The translations under genes and the position numbers were made by a program. 64,000 nucleotides of DNA from Adineta vaga (Eukaryota; Animalia; Rotifera), in NCBI GenBank assembly GCA_021613535.1, contig CP075496.1, positions 310,001-374,000 on the forward strand, in the 5' to 3' direction. Positions 1,332-23,753 of this stretch are shown in pieces (within the stretch, counting starts at the first letter, position 1; each line of letters opens with the position of its first letter). The notes beneath the pieces were generated by a model, which was not told where the DNA came from, did not search any database, and worked only from the letters and a program-made list of their open reading frames with translations.

Positions 1332-4300
1332 TTAAGATATAGAACATTCACACGTATTTAAAAGAATGTCTAGATTACGACCGAAGTAGTTCGAGATGAT
1401 TATATCTTGACAATTATCACCATTAAAATCATGAACAATTAGCTTAGTGTCCGGTTCATTATAATACGTTTCAGGTACAAATATGTTTTGTGCTTTAAAA
1501 ATTCCATTTCCATAACCAACTAACACATTTATGTAATCGGTTCGCGCACTAGGAACGAGTATATCTACATGACCATCATTATTTAAATCACCAATAGCGG
1601 GTGGCGTTGTACTAATAATATCAGTTTCTATGAAAAAATCGACATATGCACTTAAAGTTCCGTTACCATATCCAAACAATACACTAATAGCATTTCTACC
1701 TATACAAATGAAAGCAACGTCTAACCATGTGTCTTCGTTAAAGTCGCCAACAATCATTGAAGTTGGATTATAACCACCTCCAGTAAAAAATGTCTTTACA
1801 GGTTGAAAAGTTCCATTTCCATATCCAAGTAATATGCCAACCTGTTTGCTGTAATAATTGATAAAAGTGATGTCTTTATAGTTATCATTATTAAAATCAC
1901 TAACACTAAGCTTCAATGGCCAACTACTAGGTCCAGCCGAAAATCTTGTATATGTTGCAAAACTTCCATCACCATTGTTAAGAAAAACACCAATAGTATT
2001 AGTTCCATAATCATTGACAGCTATATCTAAGTAATTATCATTATTGAAGTCAGTTAATGTAATATCGTTGAATCTCTTAACGTTTTCTCCCGTTAACCGT
2101 ATTAAAACTCTGAATGTTCCATTGCTGACGAGAACATTTACATAATTTTCATAGCCATTGATAAATGCTATGTCGAGTTGATCATCATTGTTAAAATTAC
2201 CCATCGCGAACGTGACTAAATATATATCTGTCGATAAAAGTGTTGTCTGTGCTCCAAAAGTACCATTACCATTCCCAATGAGTATATTTATACTATGATA
2301 TTCGATAAAAACTAGATCGAGAATACTGTCATTATTGAAATCAGTCACCATTGTGAGACGCGGACCATCGCTCCAATTATCTGTACGTATGGCGCTTTTT
2401 TTAAATGTAAATTGACAAGGTGATGCTTAAATAAAGATTCTCTATCTTTAATTTTATTTACTTTAATTTAAAAGAGAATTTAATTTGAAAAATAAATTTA
2501 TATAAAGATGTCATTATTTTCTATGTCAAACTCGAAAGTTAAAGAATTGAATAACTGAATAGTTAATTTCAATTTTCGAGTTTGATACTACTAAATTACG
2601 AAACATATGAGTATTTTTTGTAATTATCTTACTAAATAGATTCTTGTAAAATTTATTTACTAACTTGTTGTCGTAAAAGTTGACATTGTTGTACTTGCTC
2701 TTGTACTTGTTATTATGATCTCATTCACAGTATTTGTCGTATTCATTGAAAAAACTAGAAGAAAAAAACAATTTTTTCAATGATTTTATCTTCTAATTGA
2801 AATAGAACATTTCTCTTAAAGTTCATACCTGTTGAAACAATTTCATTCTTTTGATATCGAGCAAAATAAATAGAAAATATAATAAGAACCAATACAACAA
2901 ACAAAAACAATAAAATTTTGACAGAACATTGAATTGATGTATAAAAATTGTTTCTAATAAACAGAATTATAGATTATTAATCAAATTAATATAAAGAAGA
3001 CATACTGAGATATAACATTTGTTGATGTAGATTCTAAATGAAAAGTACGATTATGAATAATTGTGTTCATAGGTTCAATTGTCGTTATTTCGATTGTACG
3101 AAAAGGTTGAACAGTATTCACTCGTCTCTTTCGATAATGATATATTTTAGCTAAAATTCGAACTATTTGAGGACAAATCCATTTGAGAATAATTGTAAGA
3201 CCACTTTGAATACCAAGTACAAAAGCTATTGCATAAAGTAAATTAAATTGTTGAATATAAGTATATGAACAAAACAAAGGTAAACATTTTTGGAAATATA
3301 ATGAATAATTAATTGATATGATCCATTCTTCAATAAAAAGTTTATCGATAAGTTCATTAATAGTTGTATTAATTGAGAATCGACTTATTGTTGATGTCGA
3401 AAGAGAAGATGAAGAATTTATAGAATTCATATATTGTTCAATAGAATTAATACATAAAGAATCATAAAAACATTCAAGAGTTGATGCATGAAATGATTCA
3501 CTTGGTGTACATCCTATTTTAAGACCTTTAATTAAAAACATTTCAGAAGAATTTATTTTTATAAAATTTGCTTGACTTGTACAATTTTGATACAATGTAC
3601 AGGAACAATTATTATCATAAATCATATCATATGTATATGCAAAATAATCATCAATTTCATTAAAAGGAGCAATATAATCGAAATTTGTTCCATAAGTTGA
3701 TACAATTCTATTTCCATGATTTATACTTCGAACTAAATCGAAAAGACGAGAGAATATTTTAGGAGCATTGGATTTGCTTTGTTCAATCAATGAATTAATA
3801 CGTGTATGAAAAACTATTTCTGTTTGAAGTTTAGTTGTTATAAATAATGAAGAAAGTAATTGATGAATAGAAGTATTTACTGATTTATTAACAAGTTCAC
3901 ATAATCCAGTTAAATATTGTAAATGAGCTGAGAGAAAACGACGATAATCTTTTAGATCATAAATAGAAAGATTAGAAATAAGATTCATTGTAAGATTATT
4001 TCGCCATTCATTCGAAATAAATGTACTTGAACAAATCTTTTATTAATAGAAAAAGAAAAAGAATTTTATCATTTATAATATTCACTTCTTTTTTTACCTG
4101 ATGTAAACGTGATTGAATTGTGACATAATTATCGTATGTTGATGCAATTAATGAACAAGGACATTCTAAATTATTTCCATAATTCCTTTGAAGATCATTG
4201 TATAAACTAAAAGATGGTTTATTGAAAGTTTTCATCATTGTTTCAGGTTGTATGACACTGTATACAGTGAGAATACCGACACCAATAATTAACAAAATAA

Positions 4301-7300
4301 TATAAAGACGAGTAGCCCATTGACCAAGATGTTTAGCTGAAATTCGATCAATTCTACTTCCAAAACTTCTCAAAGGAAAAATATTTAGATTGATTGCTGT
4401 GATATATAAAAATCTTGCTAATTGTTGTATCATTGTTCTCAATTGATGAAACCAATTCACATGAACTTTGAAAAAAAAGAAAATAGTAAATATAATCTCA
4501 AGGTTAGGTGTGAGTTTTATATTCTCATCTACGTCCATTCTAATCTAATATTAGTCAATATAAACCTGATGAATGAGTATTTGATTGATGTTGTCGTTTG
4601 ATTTTCAACTTGAATAAACGAAAGACAAACTTGACAAGTTGAGGTGTAATTAAACGTAATGAAACAGTAAGACCACCTATCATAGATAATAATGTGATCA
4701 TCACTCCAATAGTATTCTTTGCTCGAATTGTAAAAGAATAAGTACAATAATTAGGTGCACAAAATTCGTAATAACTTTTATATGAAATCGATGTATTCCA
4801 TTTTTCAATCATCATATCTTTAACTATCATTTCAATTGAAGTATTTGGAGTAAAACGATTTAACTTTGGATTATAAATAAGAGGACGAATATCAAATGAT
4901 GATGGATATACTGTAGTTTGAATATAAGCTGATTTTATGTGACTTTTTATAATTGATAAACAATCCGAATTTGAATAAAAACATTCAAGTGTTGAAAGTA
5001 GAAGAGAATCAATAGCAAAACATCCTTGAATAAAACCTGGTACTACATATGCAATATTAAAATTATAACTCTCGTCAGATTTCATATCGACATTATAAAT
5101 AGCGATTGGACTTTGACAATGAGAATTAGTAGCACAGATACAGTTCACAGATGTTGTGTTGATATCACGAGTTCCAGTCAAAGAAAATTTTAACTAAAAA
5201 AAACTTTTCAAACATATGAAATTTCCTAACAAATTCTCCTAAAAAAACAGGGATGGACGGGTTTAAGTAAAAATTTGAACTTTCATATTCACATACTCAT
5301 CGTAACCCTATGGAATAATATTGTTGCATTTTTAGAATTGAAAATTGTCCTAAGTCTATTTTCATTATTCTTTGACAAAAGAAATCAATAGAGTGATATG
5401 AGGTCGTTTTATTATTCATATGAATAACATACCTTTATTGGTTGTTGACCATTTGTTTCGTTTATTATTGTATCTATGATCAAGTTTGTATCGATCATTT
5501 GAACACTTCCTTTTACTCCCATATAAGGTTGATCGACTTGCATAAGAAGACGTATTGTGTTGACAACAAGACTAAAATAGATATTGGTCGATTGAATAAA
5601 TTGATTGAGAGTTACATTTAATTGTGTATCGAATTCATTTTCATTAAGTACATTCGATGTGACGAAGAATTGTATGATAAAATTATTAATAGCATTATCA
5701 ATTGTTTTATTAGCCATTTGACAAAGATCTGATAATAATTGAAATTGTGAGCCAGCTTGATTAAGCCAATCAATAGAAATCACTTGCGTTGAGATAGATG
5801 TCATGATTGCAATCAAAGATTCGCTAATAATATCACTTGAACATACTTGATGAAAGATTGGAGACAATTTAATAAATGTACGATAAGGTATTGCCATTGT
5901 TGAACATGGACAATTGAGTGTATTTGAATACAACATTTGCAAGTCTTTGTAAACGATTAATGATGGATTTGATATTGTTATTGAAGTCGTCTGAGTACTC
6001 AGTGAAGTGAAGAGAAGAAGTACGAGCAATGAGCCTAATGATATATATAAACAAAGAAATGAACGTGTTACCACATACATATCTTACGAGGGAGCTTCCA
6101 TGGGTGACACTTTTCGTTTAAGTATAGTGGTGTGGAAGCAGGATTTTTCGGTGGGTCGAGCGTCAGGTTTAGAAAATGGGTCCCAATTAAAACTTATGGA
6201 CGGATAACATGAATTTTTGCCGATGAGCGATAATCCATTTATAAGAATGCCGTCGTATGCTATGTCAATTCTCATAAAAAAATTTCTATCCGTTCAGCAA
6301 TTATAATGTTTCGAAAACTGCCGTAATGTGCGACGGCATTTTTATAAATGGGTTATCACTCATCATTAAAAATACGATCTCAATAACAACAGAGTTTGGA
6401 GACGAACCATTTTAGACCTTTTATCTAAACACTACTTATAGGCAAAAGATAAGCTCAAACGGAAGATGTCACTTGACGAGATTCCCTCGTTAGATTGTAG
6501 AATTCAATATGGTACGAAAACACTTTATCTCCATTCACATCGTCAAGATGTACAGTGAAAATGATCTTACCAGTTAACAGGATTAAATAGACACGAGTGA
6601 TTATCTTCTGTTGCATGATAACCGCTTCTGTTCGATCGCCGTGATCCTTAAACAAATTCAACTGTTTTGTTTTTTGAGCAAATTTGCGTATATGTGTTGC
6701 ATTATATTCTATAAATCATATAAAAAGTTCAGTACGAGTCTATTTTCATGATACTTAAGAGATACCTGAATTAACTGTAATATTTTTTGAGCAATGTTTT
6801 AATTTCCATGCAATATTAATCAAGAATGGTGCGATCAAACGAAACACAATAATGAGACCACCATAAAGACTAATTAACAGAGCCATTGCATATAATACAT
6901 TAGTTTGATCGGTTGTAGTGTATGTGCAGAACGAACAAGCACATCTATCGAAATATATTGAATAATTCATTTCTGTTGACCATTCTTCAATGAACAGATC
7001 AAGTAAATAATTGTTTAAAGAAATATTTTCTTGTTTTGAAGATAGAACAGAATCGGTCCAGTTCGAATGCATCTACACAAAAAAAGAATATATTATGAAA
7101 TATATGATAAGTAACATAGATACTTGATTAAGAATTGGAAAATAGTCAAATAATAACATAAGACATTTGATATCATACAAACAATTAAGTGTACTTGGAA
7201 GAAGACCTTCAAATGGAGTACAACCTGCAAAGAATCCGTCGATTGTTACAATTGCATTATAGTCAATTAATGTGAAAAAGTATTTCGGAATATCGGGTTT

Positions 7301-8964
7301 ATTGTTTGGTAACGTATAGAAACCAGCTGATTTAATTAGATTTGTACTACCACAAGTTGTAATGGTATTCATGCCAGAAGCATCAGCGGTCTCATTATCA
7401 GCGAACGTCTGAAATCTATTAATAACATAGTTTACTCCATCGCCGACAACACCAACCACTGCATTCGTATTGAGAGCTGAAATTAAGTAATTTGCTCGAG
7501 TTGTAATTTTGATATAACTGAGAAATGAATTAATCTGAGTAGATATACTGTTTCTAGACAGTTTAATAGTAGCATCGACTTCTGATCGAATTTTATCTTC
7601 AGAAAGAAGATAAATACTAACAAACTCGTTATTATCAAGATCAATTTGATTTTGTAAGGTTGCGTCTTGAGAGATTGAACAAAGACTGGCCAAAAGTTGG
7701 AACTATACATAGAAATAAAGTTAATTAAAAAAAAGCTTTTTAACGCAATCTTTACGAAATAAAATAACAGTTCAGTTTCAATGACATATTTTATTAATTC
7801 AAGATGTAATAGGTATAAATCAGATTGTTTATGCGAGTTATGAATATAATCTCATTCTATCACATTCACTTTTCTAAATAAACATAATTATGTCTCAAAA
7901 ACCTTCTCTCTATATTTCTATTGAATATCATGTCATGATCGAATTTATTCCCAATGAAGAACAAAATTTCATCAATAAATAAAATTTTATATTTACCTGA
8001 GAACTTGCTGTTGTTCGAAAATCTGATGCTCCATATGTACTTGCATCTGTTAGATAAAGAGCTTTGATCCATTGTTGGCTAACGAAGAAACTCGAACAAA
8101 CAGGATGAAATGTAATTGCATTTGAAATAAAACTTTTGTAAGACATTGTAATTATTGAACATGGACATGAAAGTGTTTCAGCATGTTGCAAATAAAGTTC
8201 TTTGAAAATCGAAGGAGTTATTTTTGAAACAACAATTGTTCGAGATTGTGGTTTTACCATAGCAATGAAGAAAAGAATATAGAGAGACACTGAAATGAAA
8301 TAAAAATCATTTTGCTTCTTTATTAGTTACGCATTTGTATTTTATAATTCTTCAAAAATGTGCTTAAATCATAATAGTTGTAGTAAAGCTGCGAGATTCT
8401 ATTCAACTGTAATAATGAACTATTGATTTTATTTATCATTATTACTTCCTTTTGTACTTTCCGTCAATCTTCAAAATTCTCTGAGAAAAACATATTTGTA
8501 TTGTAGAAATGTTCAAACTCACTACTATTTCTACATATATAAGATGTTTTCTTAATGATATTAAAACTCAGCTGTTAAATAAACAATATAAATAAATTAA
8601 AAATTATTTTTCGTGTTAATCGTGATAATAGACATAGATAAACAAGTATATCTATCGAATTAATGCTTGTTCTAATAGTTTAATATTAGTTTTAAGCAAA
8701 TTTACGTTCGAGTAAACAGAGATGTTCTGCATCTCTACTTATTGTAAGTCTCAATTATTTTGGGCAAGAATTGTTAACTTCGCTTTTTGACTTACCAACG
8801 AGAAGAAGAACGTACAACCAAGTGGCATATTTTTGATGTTTAAGAATAGTTGGTGGATCTATGAGTTCATCATCATTATCAATATATGTATCATCTTCAG
8901 GAATAAAAAGATTGTAATTGTATATTTGATCATGAAACCAGTGGAATAAATTTCTAAGATTCAT
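1332..8964 (-). CDS. Large multi-exon membrane protein (~1800 aa): three tandem TM-Cys-rich ectodomain-TM modules, then TM, Thr-rich linker and FG-GAP/VCBS beta-propeller
   Basis: About 12 exons joined through GT-AG introns, in frame at the junctions I traced (ORFs 8755-8985, 7928-8290, 7073-7710, 6755-7072, 6455-6661, 5412-6080, 4555-5181, 4008-4538, 2981-3988, small exons ~2830-2953 and ~2666-2754, then 1332-2425). Each module has [RW][LV]YxxLL-TM, LxCPCS, FHQ/PVCSS, GCxxxxxLxxSTLxC, IExW, YxxYFxxCxxxxCTY and GGL-type TM motifs; the C-terminus has DFNxD..DI..LLGxGxGTF repeats. Confidence 0.85.
6222..6364. repeat. Intronic 34-bp inverted repeat (MITE/foldback remnant)
   Basis: gatgagcgataatccatttataagaatgccgtcg vs cgacggcatttttataaatgggttatcactcatc, 3 mismatches; lies in the long intron ~6035-6571. 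Confidence 0.6.
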
Positions 8965-17352: not shown

Positions 17353-19399
17353 ATAGTTACGAATCTGATATAATTTTTTAACCAAAGCGTGGTTTTCTAT
17401 CTAAATTTTGCCCGAAAAAAGTCTCAAAATGCGAGAAAAACTGCATTCAGAAACCACGTTGCCTATAGATATGTCTCAAATGACAAGTCGTTTTGAGGTT
17501 TCCTATATGCCTGGCCTTGTAGCTTGTCAAAAGGACTATCAAATGGTAAAAATCTATTCTATATAGTTATCAATATCATTCAGCTATTGTGCAAATACTA
17601 ATGTTTGTATTTATCATATGCTTCTTATAGATTTATAAAGTTGCTTACGAATGTAATCCTGATAGAGAGAAATATAAAAATTTATTGAAAAACGTGTCAT
17701 CGAAAATCGTACTCATCAAAAAGATTTTTCATGGTAATTTTGATGCGCACACATTTCAGCATGACTCATCTCTGTCATACACTTTTTACAGTACACATAA
17801 TCTCTCGGATAAAATTCGAACTTTCCAGATTTATTTTATTTCGATAGTAGACAAGTTAATTCATTAATCAATAATTGTTTTAGAGAGAAAACAGACAAAT
17901 CGTGTTTAAAAAAATGCTTGCATCCCAAACGAGTATCAAGAGTCTTTTATTTGTACCAGAAAAAAATAAGTAGGTCTATTGAGAAGTTTCTTCTCTTGAA
18001 ATAGAATAAATTAGGTGCTGGTAAAGCGCATGAATTATACTTTGTACGTTATTTTCACATGTGGCAAAGCCTGTCCATACCGATATATAATAAACTCATC
18101 AGAGTTTGGTTGTGCGGTGAAAATACCATGAATTGAATGGTAATTATGAGGTGCAGAGGTCAGATTAATATCTGGAGCTGAACATTGTTTTACATTGCCT
18201 AGCAAAACTTTCGTTTGATATAATACACGTTGATTGTCCTTTTCAAGATTGGGAAATGTATTTGAATGTTCATTCTTTGGATTTTGACTAAAGTATGCTC
18301 CATTCCCTAAGGAAAAATTATAAATCTAGTATGAAGGAATAAATATGTACATGATAATTAGATATTGCAAAATAAAATTATTATGGCAAGATATTCATAT
18401 AAGGGTTAATGATAAATGAAATCTCTTTTTCGACGTTTACGACTCTATGCACATATGAGAATCAAAGCTTTGAAGATATTCTTATCGAAATATTTTTTCT
18501 TTGTTAAAAACAGTTTGCTTCAGTCTAAATCATTGAGATCTTCAATATAAGTCAATCAATATTTATTTAATCTATACGAAAACATTTGTGTGATGTTTAA
18601 TTCGACAATTTTCAGCTTCAGATAGGTCATTTTTAGCAAAGAACATATTGACTATTAGTGTAATCTAGATTTTAATAATGATTACTTTCACGTTGTGTTA
18701 GTATTTGTAACGTTATTGTCACACCCATTCTTTTTAATTCTTTTTCTGATCTTACTATCATCTGTATCTTTTTCACGTCTGTTTGTCCTATTCGTATTTT
18801 TCTTTTCATTGCGTATATATAATGCTATTCTTGAGGAGAGGAAGTAAAGGGAAACTTAGTTTCATTAGCAATAAAGTTTGTCCACATCTGGCTTACTTTT
18901 GATTATACTACTATCACTAAGAGTATCGATCAAAATATTATTCGTGTACATTTATCTTATAAGACAGTATCTCTAGACGTTTTTCATATTCTAACAACGT
19001 TATCTTAAACGTTTGAAAACGACTGTACTCTGGTCTCGTAAGATACAAATTTTCATCGTATTTTACTGTAGTTCATTATACCGAAGAAGGAAATTTATGT
19101 AACGAAATAAGTGAAAAGCATTACATCCTTATTTTTGTCCATATTTTGCATTCTGTCCTTATAATTCTTTATTCGTTTCTCCTTTGATGGAAGAGTATAT
19201 AAGTGACTTTTTTGTATGAGAACGATGCGACATATGGTATGAAGAAATAAAGGAAAGTGTAGCACCACACGATCAGCGCTAGTGTCTCTTCTATCTAAAA
19301 TCGTCAATTTAGTGTGCATTGGCAACGTTGGAATATTGCATCATATATTTCACGATATCCTAGTTTATGATCTAGATTGCTACGAAAAGAATTTCTTAC

Positions 19400-19524
19400 C
19401 CCAGTTTCCTTGTCGATAATTCTTTTTATCAAAACCAAAGTCAGCAATTTGGTCAATATCTGCTCCTATAAGAAAATTAATGAATAAATATAAAAGATAA
19501 TCAGATAATTTAATGCGAAGTTTT

Positions 19525-19556
<32 letters not shown>

Positions 19557-22520
19557 GTATTAGTTTACCTATTGTACCGTGATATAGCAGCATTTCATTT
19601 CCGTTTGCTATTGCTGAGTCTTTTTGAATGAATTTTTTAGCTTCTTCATATATTGCTTCCAATGCAGTATTCTTGATTTGTTCAACAGACACAACCTGCA
19701 CAGAATCTGGCGCATAACATGTTCGCATGCGTTGTTCTATTTGACGGTAAATATTGTCTGTTTTTGATAACGCTGTCAGTTCAGCTTTTGCTGGAGCAAC
19801 TACACACGGTGGTACAGGTATAAAAGTTTGAGTAAGTTGTGTCCATCCGCGAGTTATCATCTTCTTTGCTCTTTCGCCAACAAGTTTTCCAGCTGGTTCA
19901 TCATTAATTTCCGCCAACAAACAATAAGAACGTTTTTTAATATTATTCACAATTTTTTCTAGAGTTATGTCATATGGAGACTGAGTAATATCAATGCGCA
20001 TTCCCAAATGTCTTGTGTGATCTTTTTCCACATATAAATTATTTACATCAAAATCAATGCGTTCATAATGAATTGTGCCTACATGTGGTGTGATCAAGTC
20101 AACTATGAAAGGACCTGTCTTGGTATTTTGATCGATTACTAATACATATCGCCATTGATCTCTATGAACGCGAACTGCTATCTGTAGTTTTCCCAGTTCA
20201 GTGACGATTTCATTAACGTCAGACAAGCCATGCGTAGGCAAATAACAATCTAAATCAGCTGGAACTATTTCCGGATGTAAATGTGGTATGGATCCGTTGT
20301 ATACAATCCATTGATCCATAGGCACATTCTTAGGGTACGCTGTGTAACCTCCAACAACCCAGTCCCTTATAAATCCGCCATAAAGTTTACAATCAAATTT
20401 GCAAATCAACAACCAGGCAACAGTGAGCATTCTCTCTTCTCTACTGCCTTTCTGAATTTGTACTTGGTTGAACGGCATTTGTTTGCTATTAGCGATTTGA
20501 GTAATACGTCTTTCGATGTCTTCATAAATATTTTTTGATGCGTGTCCTGTTTTTGATGTCGGGCTAGGTACAAGTATTCTTGGTGGAAGAGCTAAAATTA
20601 AGAACAGTGTACAAATTACAAAACACTAGCAAAACGAGTTTTCATAGGAAAACATTAAAATATAGTGCTTTCTAAATAAATAAAAAATAGCAATGCAATT
20701 ATTCGATAAAGAAACAACATGGGTTCAAATATGTCAAAAATGAATAGCCTATTTGGGTTATCGGAATTTCAGCAATAAAACTTTCGCCAATCGGACATTC
20801 GCACATGGCGAAAGTCTGTACTGCGACATGCATGCTACCCTCAAGTCCACTGTCTATAGATATAGACTACAATTTTCTTGAGAATGTCGATGTGAAAATT
20901 TGTGCGTATTATTGTAACCATATATCTTTTTTTATATTCTCATTCATATCCACACTGTTGAAAGTTGAACCTATTGTTGCAATACGTTTTGCACTATTTC
21001 AAAATATTTTCTTAGGATTATTTTTACCTGCACTAATCTGAATAGCTTCGGCTTTGATGTTGAGAGATTTCTTTTTCCAATTGAGACTTGCATCGAGGTC
21101 ACCTTTCATCGCAGCCATCTGACCCAAGTCATCGTATAAATCGACAAGCAGATGATCATTTGGTGAAAGTTCATCTATCATACGCTGATAGTACTTTTCG
21201 GCTAGATCAAATTTACCCATTTTCCATAAGACTCTTCCAAATAATTGAAGTGTAGCTTTCTTATTTCCATAATCATTTTTCATGTGCTCAATGACTTCTT
21301 TTAAATCATTCTCTTGATCACTGCATAATGTTACTTGAATGTTCCAAATGCCGTTGCTTCCTTGACGAATTTTGTTAAGACGAAAAATCGAACCGAACAT
21401 GAACAACACTTCAAATTCATGTTTGAATGGACTATGAGAGGATACATTAGCAAATGGCTTGCTTGCGACATTATTTGGATTTGCCTCAATCTCAAACAAG
21501 ACTCGTTCTAGATCATGTGGAATACTACTGCCAGTCGAAAATAACAAAGCTTGTTTAGGATCGACGCTTGTAGATAGAAAAGAGTTCATCGATATGAGTT
21601 GATTTACTGACTGCTGTAAAGTTTTCAGTTCATCTTTCGACACCAACTGACCTCGATAGACGCGAATGGTATGCGAACACTGATTTTCTTTCAACTGTTG
21701 ATAAATATCACGGCAGAATGATCGAAGAAGAAAAAGTATATGGATGTCCTGTACACGAAAAGCTTTGTTTAATATTTTATACAGGAAACATTCACGAGTA
21801 TACCATTGTAATGCCTTGGTAGGCGAATAACTCTGCTCATATTCGGCTAATATGCTTAACTCCAAATCGTTTCCTTTATACTGAGTTTTACAAAGATCAA
21901 TCAACTCTTTTTTATCTTTTTCAGTAACCTTCAATCTGAGCAAGACATCCATGAGCACTTGCCAATGAACGAACTGACCATTTAGACTGACTGCTGACTT
22001 GTCTTTTTTTGTTTTATCAAAGAAAAAGATTTCGAACGACAGAAAATTTGCCAATTTCAGTCGATTCTGTTGATCAGCTGTTACTTGGGAAACAAGAACA
22101 CTTAGCTCAGTTATAACTGCTTTTACCTGAAAAAAAGTATGAAAAATTGATATCATAGATTATATGTCAAACTTTGTAGAACTTTTTAGCCCAAGTATTA
22201 TGCAAAGTTTCGTCCATACAATACACATAAATATCCGAAATTTGTGGAATATGATGAATGCGCGGTATTTCATGCTGACCCAAACTACCACTTATAATAA
22301 GTACCAGATAATAGCCTGGAGTGACCTGCTTGATATAGTTGCGAAACTCATCTGGATCATCGAATGTCTTGAGATAATTGATGGCTGCACGAAGTTTTTT
22401 CTGTGTCTCTTGATTATCCTTGGTTTTATAAACATTCAAATCTAACCAAATAAGACTAAATGCTTCAAGATTTTTGTCAGCAGTGCCAAATCCAGTTTTT
22501 GAGACAACTGACTTAGCCAT
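19400..22520 (-). CDS. Multidomain fusion: REC-like domain - mono-ADP-ribosyltransferase - TPR - class II (CCA/poly(A)-polymerase-like) nucleotidyltransferase - truncated PARP catalytic domain
   Basis: Exon 22173-22520 (LIWLD...IISGSLG...IYVYC); exon ~21028-22126 (ART motifs YRG, FLSTS, EFE, then TPRs); a phase-1 junction joins it in frame to the exon starting ~20591, which runs into ORF 19510-20478 (GGFIRD, DLD, RIDFDVNNL; then VEQIKN, LYHGT); exon ~19400-19465 (GFDKKNYRQGNWG). No downstream GxYFA exon found. Confidence 0.75.
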
Positions 22521-22900: not shown

Positions 22901-23009
22901 ATGTGGGTGAGAGTATTCTGTTATACGTGACTCACACCCATATCCACACCCACACCCACACCCTCAAGATGTGAATGTGGGTGATAGTAGTATGTCACAC
23001 CCACACACC
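22901..23009. repeat. Two adjacent telomere-like hairpin elements
   Basis: atgtgggtga...ctcacacccatatccacacccacacccacaccctcaag followed by gtgggtgatagtagtatgtcacacccacac; the second spacer resembles the 17311 spacer. Confidence 0.75.
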
Positions 23010-23753
23010 AAAAGAGAAAAGTAAATTGTTAGATGATAATAAATTTCTTTTTCTTTTAATATACAATAAATATAAATAAAAAGGTATTGCAAATATAAAT
23101 GATAAAATGAATGCTTTGATAAATTGAATATTTTCAATATCTTGTAAATTCAATTGATCATCATAAAAATATGTAAATATATTCATTTGAAATAAACAAA
23201 TTGTAATAAAAGGTATTTTAAAACTTAAATTATATTTTGAATAACAAAATGATATGATAAGAATTGTTGTTAATGGTAAAGATATATTATAAGTAAATAA
23301 AAGATAATTATATGAACTTTCTAAATACCAATATAATGAATGAAAGAAATAAGGAATTAAATATAAAACACAAATCATATCTTGTTGAAATAAAGTTAAA
23401 ATAAAAATGAAAAATGCAATTAAATGATGTAAAAATGTATTAAAACTAAGTAAAAATTTATTTGTATAAATCATTTCTATAAAATATAATATACTATTAC
23501 TTATTAAAACAAAATTAAATTGAAAAATAGCTAAATGTTTAGAATATTGAGTTGATGGAAGAATTTTTTTTACTTTTATACAATAACAAATACAAATTAG
23601 AATTTCAATAAACCAAAATTGATTGAAAATATAATAAATATTTGGAATAAAACCATCTAAATCTTTAGATATTTCAATCCATATAAAGAATAGTTTGAAA
23701 TAGAAATAACTTCTTTCAAATATCATCGATATTTCTTCATAGATATTCATCAA
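22995..23753 (-). CDS. Polytopic membrane protein, possibly TLC (TRAM/LAG1/CLN8)-like
   Basis: 252-aa ORF with ~6-7 hydrophobic helices and an FLHHL motif; its last codons and stop lie within the hairpin repeat. Confidence 0.55.
   Translation of the reverse strand: MMNIYEEISMIFERSYFYFKLFFIWIEISKDLDGFIPNIYYIFNQFWFIEILICICYCIKVKKILPSTQYSKHLAIFQFNFVLISNSILYFIEMIYTNKFLLSFNTFLHHLIAFFIFILTLFQQDMICVLYLIPYFFHSLYWYLESSYNYLLFTYNISLPLTTILIISFCYSKYNLSFKIPFITICLFQMNIFTYFYDDQLNLQDIENIQFIKAFILSFIFAIPFYLYLLYIKRKRNLLSSNNLLFSFGVWV

Follow-up and report, generated by a model that had tools for sequence, protein, structure and literature searches.

The window studied here, 64,000 nucleotides (nt) of the genome of the bdelloid rotifer Adineta vaga (positions 310,001 to 374,000 of contig CP075496.1, assembly GCA_021613535.1; all coordinates below are those of the window unless another locus is named), carries on its minus strand a coding region of five exons (18035..22520) that corresponds to the public model I4U23_017229, a protein of 935 amino acids (aa) that GenBank already lists as hypothetical. 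The best explanation overall, and in our judgment a probable one, is that this is an intact gene of five parts that arose by exon shuffling, and that it places a cassette predicted to use nucleoside triphosphates (NTP) and nicotinamide adenine dinucleotide (NAD) under a head with an ADP-ribosyltransferase (ART) domain and tetratricopeptide repeats (TPR). The head, encoded by exons 1 and 2, consists of a receiver-like domain, the ART domain and a short TPR region; the tail consists of a domain with a nucleotidyltransferase fold, which we call X, and of a PARP domain. To judge from the anatomy of the gene, head and tail come from two bdelloid families that were fused by exon shuffling. The fusion of two families, its apparent mode of origin, its conservation in the bdelloid Rotaria and the completeness of the PARP domain are new.

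The five exons sum to 2808 nt, that is, 935 codons and a stop, and the translation of each is an exact substring of I4U23_017229 (aa 1-116, 117-482, 484-823, 825-845 and 847-935), with the split codons at three of the junctions encoding A483, G824 and G846. Exon 1 (22173..22520, with the ATG at 22520) encodes the receiver-like (flavodoxin-like) alpha/beta domain, aa 1-116, and is followed by a gt...ag intron of 46 nt in phase 0 (22127..22172), which agrees with the public model. Exon 2 (21028..22126) encodes a linker, the ART domain (21359..21832, aa 215-372) and about two TPR repeats (21053..21250, aa 409-474), and ends in a phase-1 donor, G|gtaaaa. Intron 2 (20592..21027; 436 nt, phase 1) separates head from tail. 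Exon 3 (19569..20591) begins with a Ser/Thr-rich linker that starts at LPPRILVP and runs through X (19810..20520, aa 507-743) into the first part of the PARP domain (19569..19749, from aa 764), ending beyond LYHGT. The remainder of PARP is encoded by exon 4 (19400..19465; 66 nt; ADIDQIADFGFD...NW) and exon 5 (18035..18306; GNGAYFS, DEFIIYRYGQALP, DEFIIY and the stop), with two further phase-1 introns, intron 3 (19466..19568; 103 nt) and the unusually long intron 4 (18307..19399; 1093 nt). All of these features lie on the minus strand. An earlier note on this DNA, made from its letters alone, had ended the feature at 19400; the coding region in fact continues to 18035.

The same note had proposed that a donor near 21028 and an acceptor near 20591 put the ART-TPR frame in register with an open reading frame (ORF) at 19510-20478, and this proposal is borne out. 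The donor GCA G|gtaaaa at 21028 and the acceptor ttttag|CT at 20591 are both in phase 1, the junction codon (G+CT) encodes Ala, and the same junction is found at three further bdelloid loci. The ORF encodes 322 aa, its frame is open upstream as far as the acceptor at 20591, and the motifs attributed to it (GGFIRDW, DLDCY, IDFDVNNL, VEQIKN and LYHGT) are all present.

The three loci used for comparison are L027 (Rotaria sp. Silwood2, GCA_905330235), L031 (a Rotaria sp. Silwood2 contig, GCA_905330535) and L039 (a Logan contig). Each has the exons of the A. vaga gene in unchanged order, all on one strand. Their identity to it is 58-61% over exon 2 and 52-55% over exon 3, while the nearest A. vaga paralogues are less alike (47-50% over exon 2 and 48% over exon 3); because of this greater closeness we regard the three loci as orthologue-grade. 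At all four loci the head ends in a phase-1 donor (G|gtaa or G|gtag), the tail begins at an acceptor tttag|CT, and the codon so formed encodes Ala; on comparison of the sequences, the recurrence of a junction of the same phase at three more bdelloid loci is far above chance. The gap between donor and acceptor has nearly the same length in the window (436 nt) and in L039 (about 436 nt), is slightly longer in L031 (483 nt) and extends to 5.3 kb in L027, and between A. vaga, L031 and L039 it is conserved only at the splice sites; the gap at 20592-21027 appears to behave like an intron. An extra exon near 20749-20853, which had been thought possible, finds no support: the 935-aa public model does not contain it, and within the gap nothing but the splice sites is conserved between species.

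The peptide at the start of exon 3 reads ALPPRILVP, AIPPRTLIP, AIPPKVLVP and ALPPRMLVP at the four loci, so that the motif (L/I)PP(R/K)xL(V/I)P is kept despite a synonymous divergence (dS) of at least 1 between the lineages, and since it is conserved in frame at such a dS, exon 3 is expected to be translated from its first base. In Rotaria, exon 3 has no in-frame ATG upstream of the conserved first helices of X and would therefore be unable to start a protein alone. Joined gene models are available from Rotaria sp. Silwood2 (P0151, partial), from R. socialis (P0223, 986 aa, with the same domain order as I4U23_017229) and from A. vaga itself. The ratio of nonsynonymous to synonymous divergence (dN/dS) lies between 0.07 and 0.29 in every exon pair with a computable dS, with at least one such pair for each of the four exons tested, a range that points to purifying selection on the exons. 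The claim that all the parts belong to one polypeptide has thus held up, through the exact match to I4U23_017229 and through Rotaria gene models that join the same parts, and on this combination of comparison and annotation we regard it as very probable that head and tail form a single gene.

Much less probably, the region could hold two syntenic genes, one encoding the ART and short TPR region and the other encoding X-PARP, with a spliced leader or an unseen first exon joined at 20591. Bdelloids trans-splice; at all four loci a stop codon follows within 3-15 codons of the unspliced donor, which makes a short isoform possible; the X-PARP copy in the window has an in-frame ATG at 20478; and head and tail are 5.3 kb apart in L027. 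However, the ATG at 20478 is preceded by an out-of-frame ATG, and in Rotaria the first in-frame ATG comes only after the RExRM motif, beyond the first helices of X, which are conserved and modelled with pLDDT 94-97. The start peptide of exon 3, conserved in frame at saturated dS, is clearly internal coding sequence in paralogues, the phases at the junction agree in every species, and head and tail are joined in each of the independent gene models (A. vaga, Rotaria sp. Silwood2, R. socialis).

A single gene could also be a relic, namely a decaying chimera in which a partial helicase-X-PARP duplicate came to lie after a truncated ART-TPR gene without having its own function. The missing helicase part, the very short TPR array, the two unusually long introns, the microsatellite in one intron, and the presence in the genome of other family copies that are broken by internal stops would all fit such a history. 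We nevertheless consider it very improbable: the five exons are all open with their catalytic motifs intact, the arrangement is kept at three or more further Rotaria-type DNA loci and in the R. socialis model, and dN/dS is well under 1 at saturated dS.

The proposed origin of this single, intact gene emerges from a comparison of its two halves with the families to which they belong. Exons 1 and 2 fall within a bdelloid receiver-like/ART/TPR family as typical members; this family is greatly expanded in A. vaga (exon 1 has at least 150 scored matches across the genome, exon 2 at least 112). The window gene departs from it in having a TPR array reduced to about two repeats and a donor that opens onto a foreign tail. 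Among the relatives nearest to exon 2, several are open frames of 371-386 aa; in those that were read, about two TPRs are followed by a terminal phase-1 consensus donor. On the same strand, these relatives are followed by quite different tails: PARG and PBZ (L032), a TPR array (L033), NHL propellers (L034 and L036), LRR_6 (L035) and an Ig-like KY domain (L037). In-frame acceptors were found for the tails of all the heads from L032 to L037, which gives candidate gene models; the comparison of L033-L037 (respectively G000:C5:4041300-4049500, C6:13089700-13097900, C5:2540300-2548500, C5:4596100-4604300 and C5:4072500-4080700) suggests that tails have been swapped at one intron.

The L032 locus (G000:C1:11295000-11303200; minus strand, ORFs 7826-8200, 6697-7809, 5773-6615 and 3497-5950) is worth a separate mention. 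It combines a receiver-like/ART/short-TPR head with a phase-1 donor, a 132-nt intron and an in-frame acceptor that leads into a microbial-type PARG (E 5e-22) and a PBZ finger. If L032 is one gene, a writer and an eraser of ADP-ribose would be carried on one chain.

The tail has its own family. X-PARP occurs in at least 12 copies in the A. vaga genome, and the copies examined stand at the end of very long open frames, in which Pfam recognizes a DEAD/DEAH helicase (three of the three scanned) and, in one, Ank repeats; neither helicase nor Ank repeats are recognized by Pfam in I4U23_017229. These helicase-X-PARP proteins of bdelloids (approximately 1950-2260 aa) contain a cassette homologous to that of the window gene (38-48% identity) and share with it both a phase-1 intron before xPPRxL and an intron at 'WG|xG' of PARP, whereas the window gene has the receiver-like/ART/short-TPR head in place of the Ank/helicase part and an X that falls in a clade of its own. 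In four X-PARP paralogues the first of these introns lies exactly before (V/L/I)(P/S)PR(I/V)L, in the place and phase of the acceptor in the window. The existence of a phase-1 intron in each parent family would explain how recombination between introns gave an in-frame fusion. In a tree of X (root undefined, two rows with very long branches) six copies fused to an ART form, together with the short protein P0020, one clade with SH-aLRT 98. That the ART-fused copies form a single clade fits one event preceding the divergence of Adineta and Rotaria; where this clade belongs in the family, and which helicase-type lineage was the donor, the tree leaves undecided.

Two of the helicase-X-PARP copies, L013 (G000:C5:2158000-2167999) and L014 (G000:C3:19413000-19422999), have a nearly identical X (branch lengths 0 and 0.008), while other X-PARP paralogues differ by at least 50%. 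This points to a recent duplication or gene conversion between chromosomes 3 and 5.

Concerning the nature of X, the earlier note had called it a nucleotidyltransferase resembling CCA-adding enzymes and poly(A) polymerases, and this holds at the level of the fold, by AlphaFold2, Foldseek and VIA-align, but not at the level of the Pfam PolyA_pol profile, whose threshold is missed. The AlphaFold2 model of X (pLDDT 92.8, pTM 0.91) was compared by Foldseek to the PDB, where the top matches are the Aquifex CC/A-adding enzyme, the Thermotoga CCA-adding enzyme and the E. coli poly(A) polymerase (E 3.6e-4 upward, probability 1.0). An independent VIA-align structure search over 48,161 chains agrees with this: it gave 3wfo first (Z = 10.0), and eight of the nine rows that follow it are also nucleotidyltransferases; the scores include 8.8 for 4wby, 8.7 for 3aql, 8.7 for FAM46B, 8.4 for 3h37, 7.5, 7.3 for 1miv and 6.7 for 2la3 (a 'CCA-adding enzyme head domain'), with 149-174 residues aligned. 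Unrelated folds score about 5 in the same search. X has approximately 237 aa, followed by a linker of approximately 20 residues to PARP, and its structural matches span the first ~175-220 residues of the enzymes. In comparison to the class II nucleotidyltransferases (PF01743), X has the fold of their head and a partial likeness to their motifs, namely a GGxxRD helix and a DxD strand (motif A, GGxVRD with DxD close behind) and an RxDFxxNxL that resembles motif B (RRDFTxNA), but differs in an insert of some 35 residues, a beta-hairpin in the model, between GGxxRD and DxD, and in having no neck, body or tail domains with the templating motif D (EDxxR).

The X family is small: searched with a profile of nine A. 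vaga copies, a set of 1.84 billion representative proteins yielded only 266 relatives, the distant ones including one MMETSP transcript, and a pattern scan of viral contigs for X found no relative. In an alignment of 42 diverse members, which reaches down to 27% identity to the X of the window, G48, F50, R52, D53, D91 and F138 are invariant and G49, W54, D89, D156, R217, K220, R224 and G225 nearly so. These residues make up the motifs GGFxRDW, DxD, GPF, xDFD and a C-terminal RxxKMxxRGW, of which the first two are found in the window protein as GGFIRDW (554) and DLDCY (595), followed by VDLITP (646) and IDFDVNNL (661). The last belongs to an ERIDFDVNNL in which the first Asp is nearly invariant, while the Arg is lost in distant protist-type members.

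Outside the rotifer family the best structural matches of X are nucleotidyltransferase-like proteins of giant viruses (mimivirus L685, Moumouvirus, Klosneuvirus and Pithovirus). A BFVD search returned them with E values from 7.5e-9 to 1e-6, under names that include 'NT pol-beta-like' and, for Pithovirus, 'poly A polymerase head'; their identity to X is only 10-20%, and their partner domains are RING, BTB and F-box. In the ESM Atlas ranking two rotifer PARP clusters (TM 0.91 and 0.89) are followed by a Nucleocytoviricota cluster (0.65), with Gad2 at 0.49-0.58 and bacterial PolyA_pol at 0.53, and in a feature search, to be taken as a lead only, Gad2 and PolyA_pol clusters reach 0.94-0.95. The likeness of X to TENT5/FAM46 and to phage Gad2 is one of fold only, with no match in sequence, and these too are leads. 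The only Pfam family touched by X is DUF5769 (PF19073), which we take to be linked to giant-virus proteins: it is matched by 31 of the 42 members, with a best E of 4.3e-7, and on the 322-aa ORF it scores 26.6 bits against a cut-off of 26.1, over profile positions 146-181 only (21-22 bits on X alone or on the whole protein). In its modelled structure, then, X adopts a nucleotidyltransferase fold close to those of PolyA_pol, DUF5769 and Gad2, and its metal-binding motifs are conserved. We can hardly credit the alternative that X is a second-messenger synthase of the cGAS/SMODS/CD-NTase type. That such enzymes belong to the same Pol beta fold superfamily, and that the context of the gene resembles that of conflict systems, speaks in its favor, but cGAS and CD-NTase chains score only 3.9-4.2 over about 95-140 residues, against 8.4-10.0 over 160-174 residues for FAM46B and the heads of CCA-adding enzymes and poly(A) polymerases, and the GGxxRD helix motif of X is the signature of class II enzymes, not of CD-NTases. 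A kinship to the SMODS and cGAS families, with which the earlier note had proposed to compare the segment, thus finds no backing in the structure comparison.

One X copy of A. vaga is annotated as a gene of its own, I4U23_022716 (P0007; 353 aa; L010, G000:C5:3097914-3101549). It matched the query only to residue 216, no PARP part was matched, and IDFDV reads LDMDV in it.

The PARP domain had been described as a stub that stops before its GxYF motif, possibly truncated. Truncation is excluded by exons 4 and 5, which supply the remainder of the domain including the Tyr and Glu of the H-Y-E triad, and by the Pfam PARP match (PF00644), which extends over aa 764-928 with 45.7 bits (E 7.1e-12, cut-off 26.7). 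The triad is formed by H 818 (LYHGT), Y 848 (GAYFS) and E 915 (DEFIIY), and exon 5 matches the C-terminal half of the PARP domain in the paralogue L017 with 43% identity (E 2e-21); as read from its sequence, the domain is complete. Among solved structures, those closest to it are PARP15 (E 5e-9, aligned to residues 20-189 of a 191-aa query), PARP4, the tankyrases and PARP12/14/10, and the catalytic domain resembles those of the mono-ART PARPs (PARP15/14/12/10), PARP4 and tankyrases; PARP15, however, has an H-Y-L triad where the window protein has H-Y-E, and the macro, WWE and ankyrin partners are absent from the window protein.

In the head, the ART and TPR assignments of the earlier note are supported, although the ART profile falls just short of its cut-off (see below). 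The ART is of the R-S-ExE kind (cholera/C3/Vis type). The ART region carries R 271 (in RVYRG), STS (301) and the ExE of EFEVLF (353), all kept in the Rotaria orthologues; these motifs are common to the bacterial R-S-E ARTs (Vis, C3; PF03496), and among PDB sequences the region matches the Vis toxin (E 2.4e-4). Over aa 409-474, Pfam TPR_12 is matched at E 1.2e-7 and consensus TPR proteins at E 4.6e-8. The receiver (REC)-like character attributed to exon 1 holds only at the level of the fold. VIA-align ranks receiver domains first (Z 8.3-9.9 over its top 27 rows, root-mean-square deviation 2.1-2.7 over about 90 residues), and the AlphaFold2 model consists of four beta-alpha units (pLDDT 79.6); on the other side, Foldseek returned nothing significant (best E 0.023), Pfam gave no match, and the phospho-acceptor Asp, which in the (beta/alpha)5 fold of receivers stands at the end of beta3, is missing, beta3 ending in Ser-Gly. 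The model suggests a receiver-like fold, at most a pseudo-receiver.

Several observations weigh against our explanation of the region as an intact, shuffled gene with an NTP- and NAD-using cassette. The junction between head and tail rests on annotation and on interspecies comparison; two of the introns, number 2 (436 nt) and number 4 (1093 nt), far exceed the others (46 and 103 nt) in length; and the AV20 annotation combines RNA-seq with ab initio prediction (PMC8494291), so that the public model is not proof of splicing. We infer the enzymatic roles of I4U23_017229 only from folds and motifs, and the ART profile ADPrib_exo_Tox (PF03496), with its cut-off of 23.4 bits, is narrowly missed both by the exon ORF (23.3) and by I4U23_017229 (21.2). 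As to X, the PF01743 PolyA_pol threshold is not reached (the ORF has no match up to E 0.1, and one of the 42 members has one at E 0.057), searches of PDB sequences with profiles of X found nothing up to E 10, and the consensus Glu of DLIEP is replaced by Thr or Ile in the ART-fused clade (DLITP/DLIIP), which could affect catalysis.

These last features bear on an alternative in which X is a non-catalytic module with a nucleotidyltransferase fold, serving as a platform for nucleotides, RNA or ADP-ribose or as a scaffold for PARP, so that the protein would be only a double ADP-ribosyltransferase. In addition to the missed PolyA_pol threshold and the lost strand Glu, it could appeal to the fact that X has none of the further domains of CCA enzymes (neck, body, tail), and to the inserted residues that separate GGFIRDW from DLD by approximately 35 positions, where class II motif A has fewer than 15. 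But the invariant residues include G48, F50, R52, D53 and D91, the nearly invariant ones G49, D89 and D156, and these are the active-site positions of class II enzymes; their conservation suggests a conserved active site in X. We therefore judge a non-catalytic X to be unlikely, and catalysis by X likely as far as its sequence can tell.

These results can be put together in the following scheme. The head would derive from a receiver-like/ART/short-TPR subfamily whose exon ends in a phase-1 donor, and the tail would be the X-PARP cassette that usually forms the C-terminus of giant Ank-helicase-X-PARP proteins and starts at a phase-1 acceptor; joining of the two phase-1 introns, before the split of Adineta and Rotaria, would have preserved the frame. 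Because X and PARP are always contiguous and stand behind different N-terminal parts, they can be viewed as a portable effector cassette, an NTP- and NAD-using pair presumably inherited from enzymes coupled to an RNA helicase, with the ART/TPR head now replacing the helicase in its control. Such a protein may be able to ADP-ribosylate by two unrelated chemistries and also to add nucleotides. Since the parent family couples X-PARP to an RNA helicase, RNA ends or nucleotides are the likeliest substrates of the cassette; among the PARPs there are some that attach ADP-ribose to phosphorylated RNA ends, and RNA 3' ends are extended by class II enzymes. The head family, hugely expanded and diversifying, points to defence or surveillance, and a diversifying defence or RNA-surveillance system would be the most plausible setting. 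We put forward only tentatively that the head governs X-PARP in defence or surveillance and that the cassette acts on RNA ends or nucleotides. A bolder version, which we offer as speculation, would make the head a recombination-ready module with a shared phase-1 intron and interchangeable tails, and the window gene a working NAD/NTP defence enzyme with a nucleotidyltransferase of the giant-virus type; if true, the head would parallel, in an animal, the exchange of cassettes known from bacterial polymorphic toxins and NLR-type immune receptors.

We know of no described protein in which one chain combines an R-S-E (toxin-type) ART with an H-Y-E PARP; a literature search on DUF5769 and on bdelloid ART/TPR and PARP/helicase/nucleotidyltransferase proteins did not find the architecture, the papers that came up mentioning A. 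vaga only for Het-C and PBZ-PARG. With a nucleotidyltransferase that has kept its active-site motifs, I4U23_017229 is predicted to be an unusual triple nucleotide-using enzyme. Its likely origin through phase-matched introns would provide a clean, datable case of exon shuffling in an asexual animal, and would mean that the nucleotidyltransferase-PARP pair is portable and separable from the helicase. If the cassette modifies RNA ends or makes a nucleotide signal, it would represent a new animal branch of NAD-dependent innate defence or RNA surveillance. The window gene is less than half the length of the helicase-linked proteins and would offer a convenient construct for tests of the cassette.

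Some minor observations concern the introns of the PARP domain and the surroundings of the gene. Intron 3 holds an (AT)n(GT)n microsatellite (19525-19565, minus strand) and splits PARP at LYHGTIG|AD; the helicase-type paralogues L013 and L017 have no intron at this position, and L039 has one. The position of intron 4 is common to L013, L039 (about 260 nt) and L027 (about 1 kb), and in the window this intron contains only short, unremarkable ORFs. The R. socialis model P0223 (L042, GCA_905331485) has about 50 unrelated residues between HGAKG and GKGAYF; it appears to read through the region of the PARP intron, and its annotation is probably slightly wrong at this point. The window is AT-rich (GC 0.24-0.40) and is located on contig C4 of the 100.8-Mb A. 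vaga genome, which comprises six contigs; the published AV20 assembly of A. vaga has six chromosomes (PMC8494291). Upstream of the gene, at 22995-23753 on the minus strand, lies an ORF of 252 aa with many hydrophobic stretches, likely to encode a multi-pass membrane protein.

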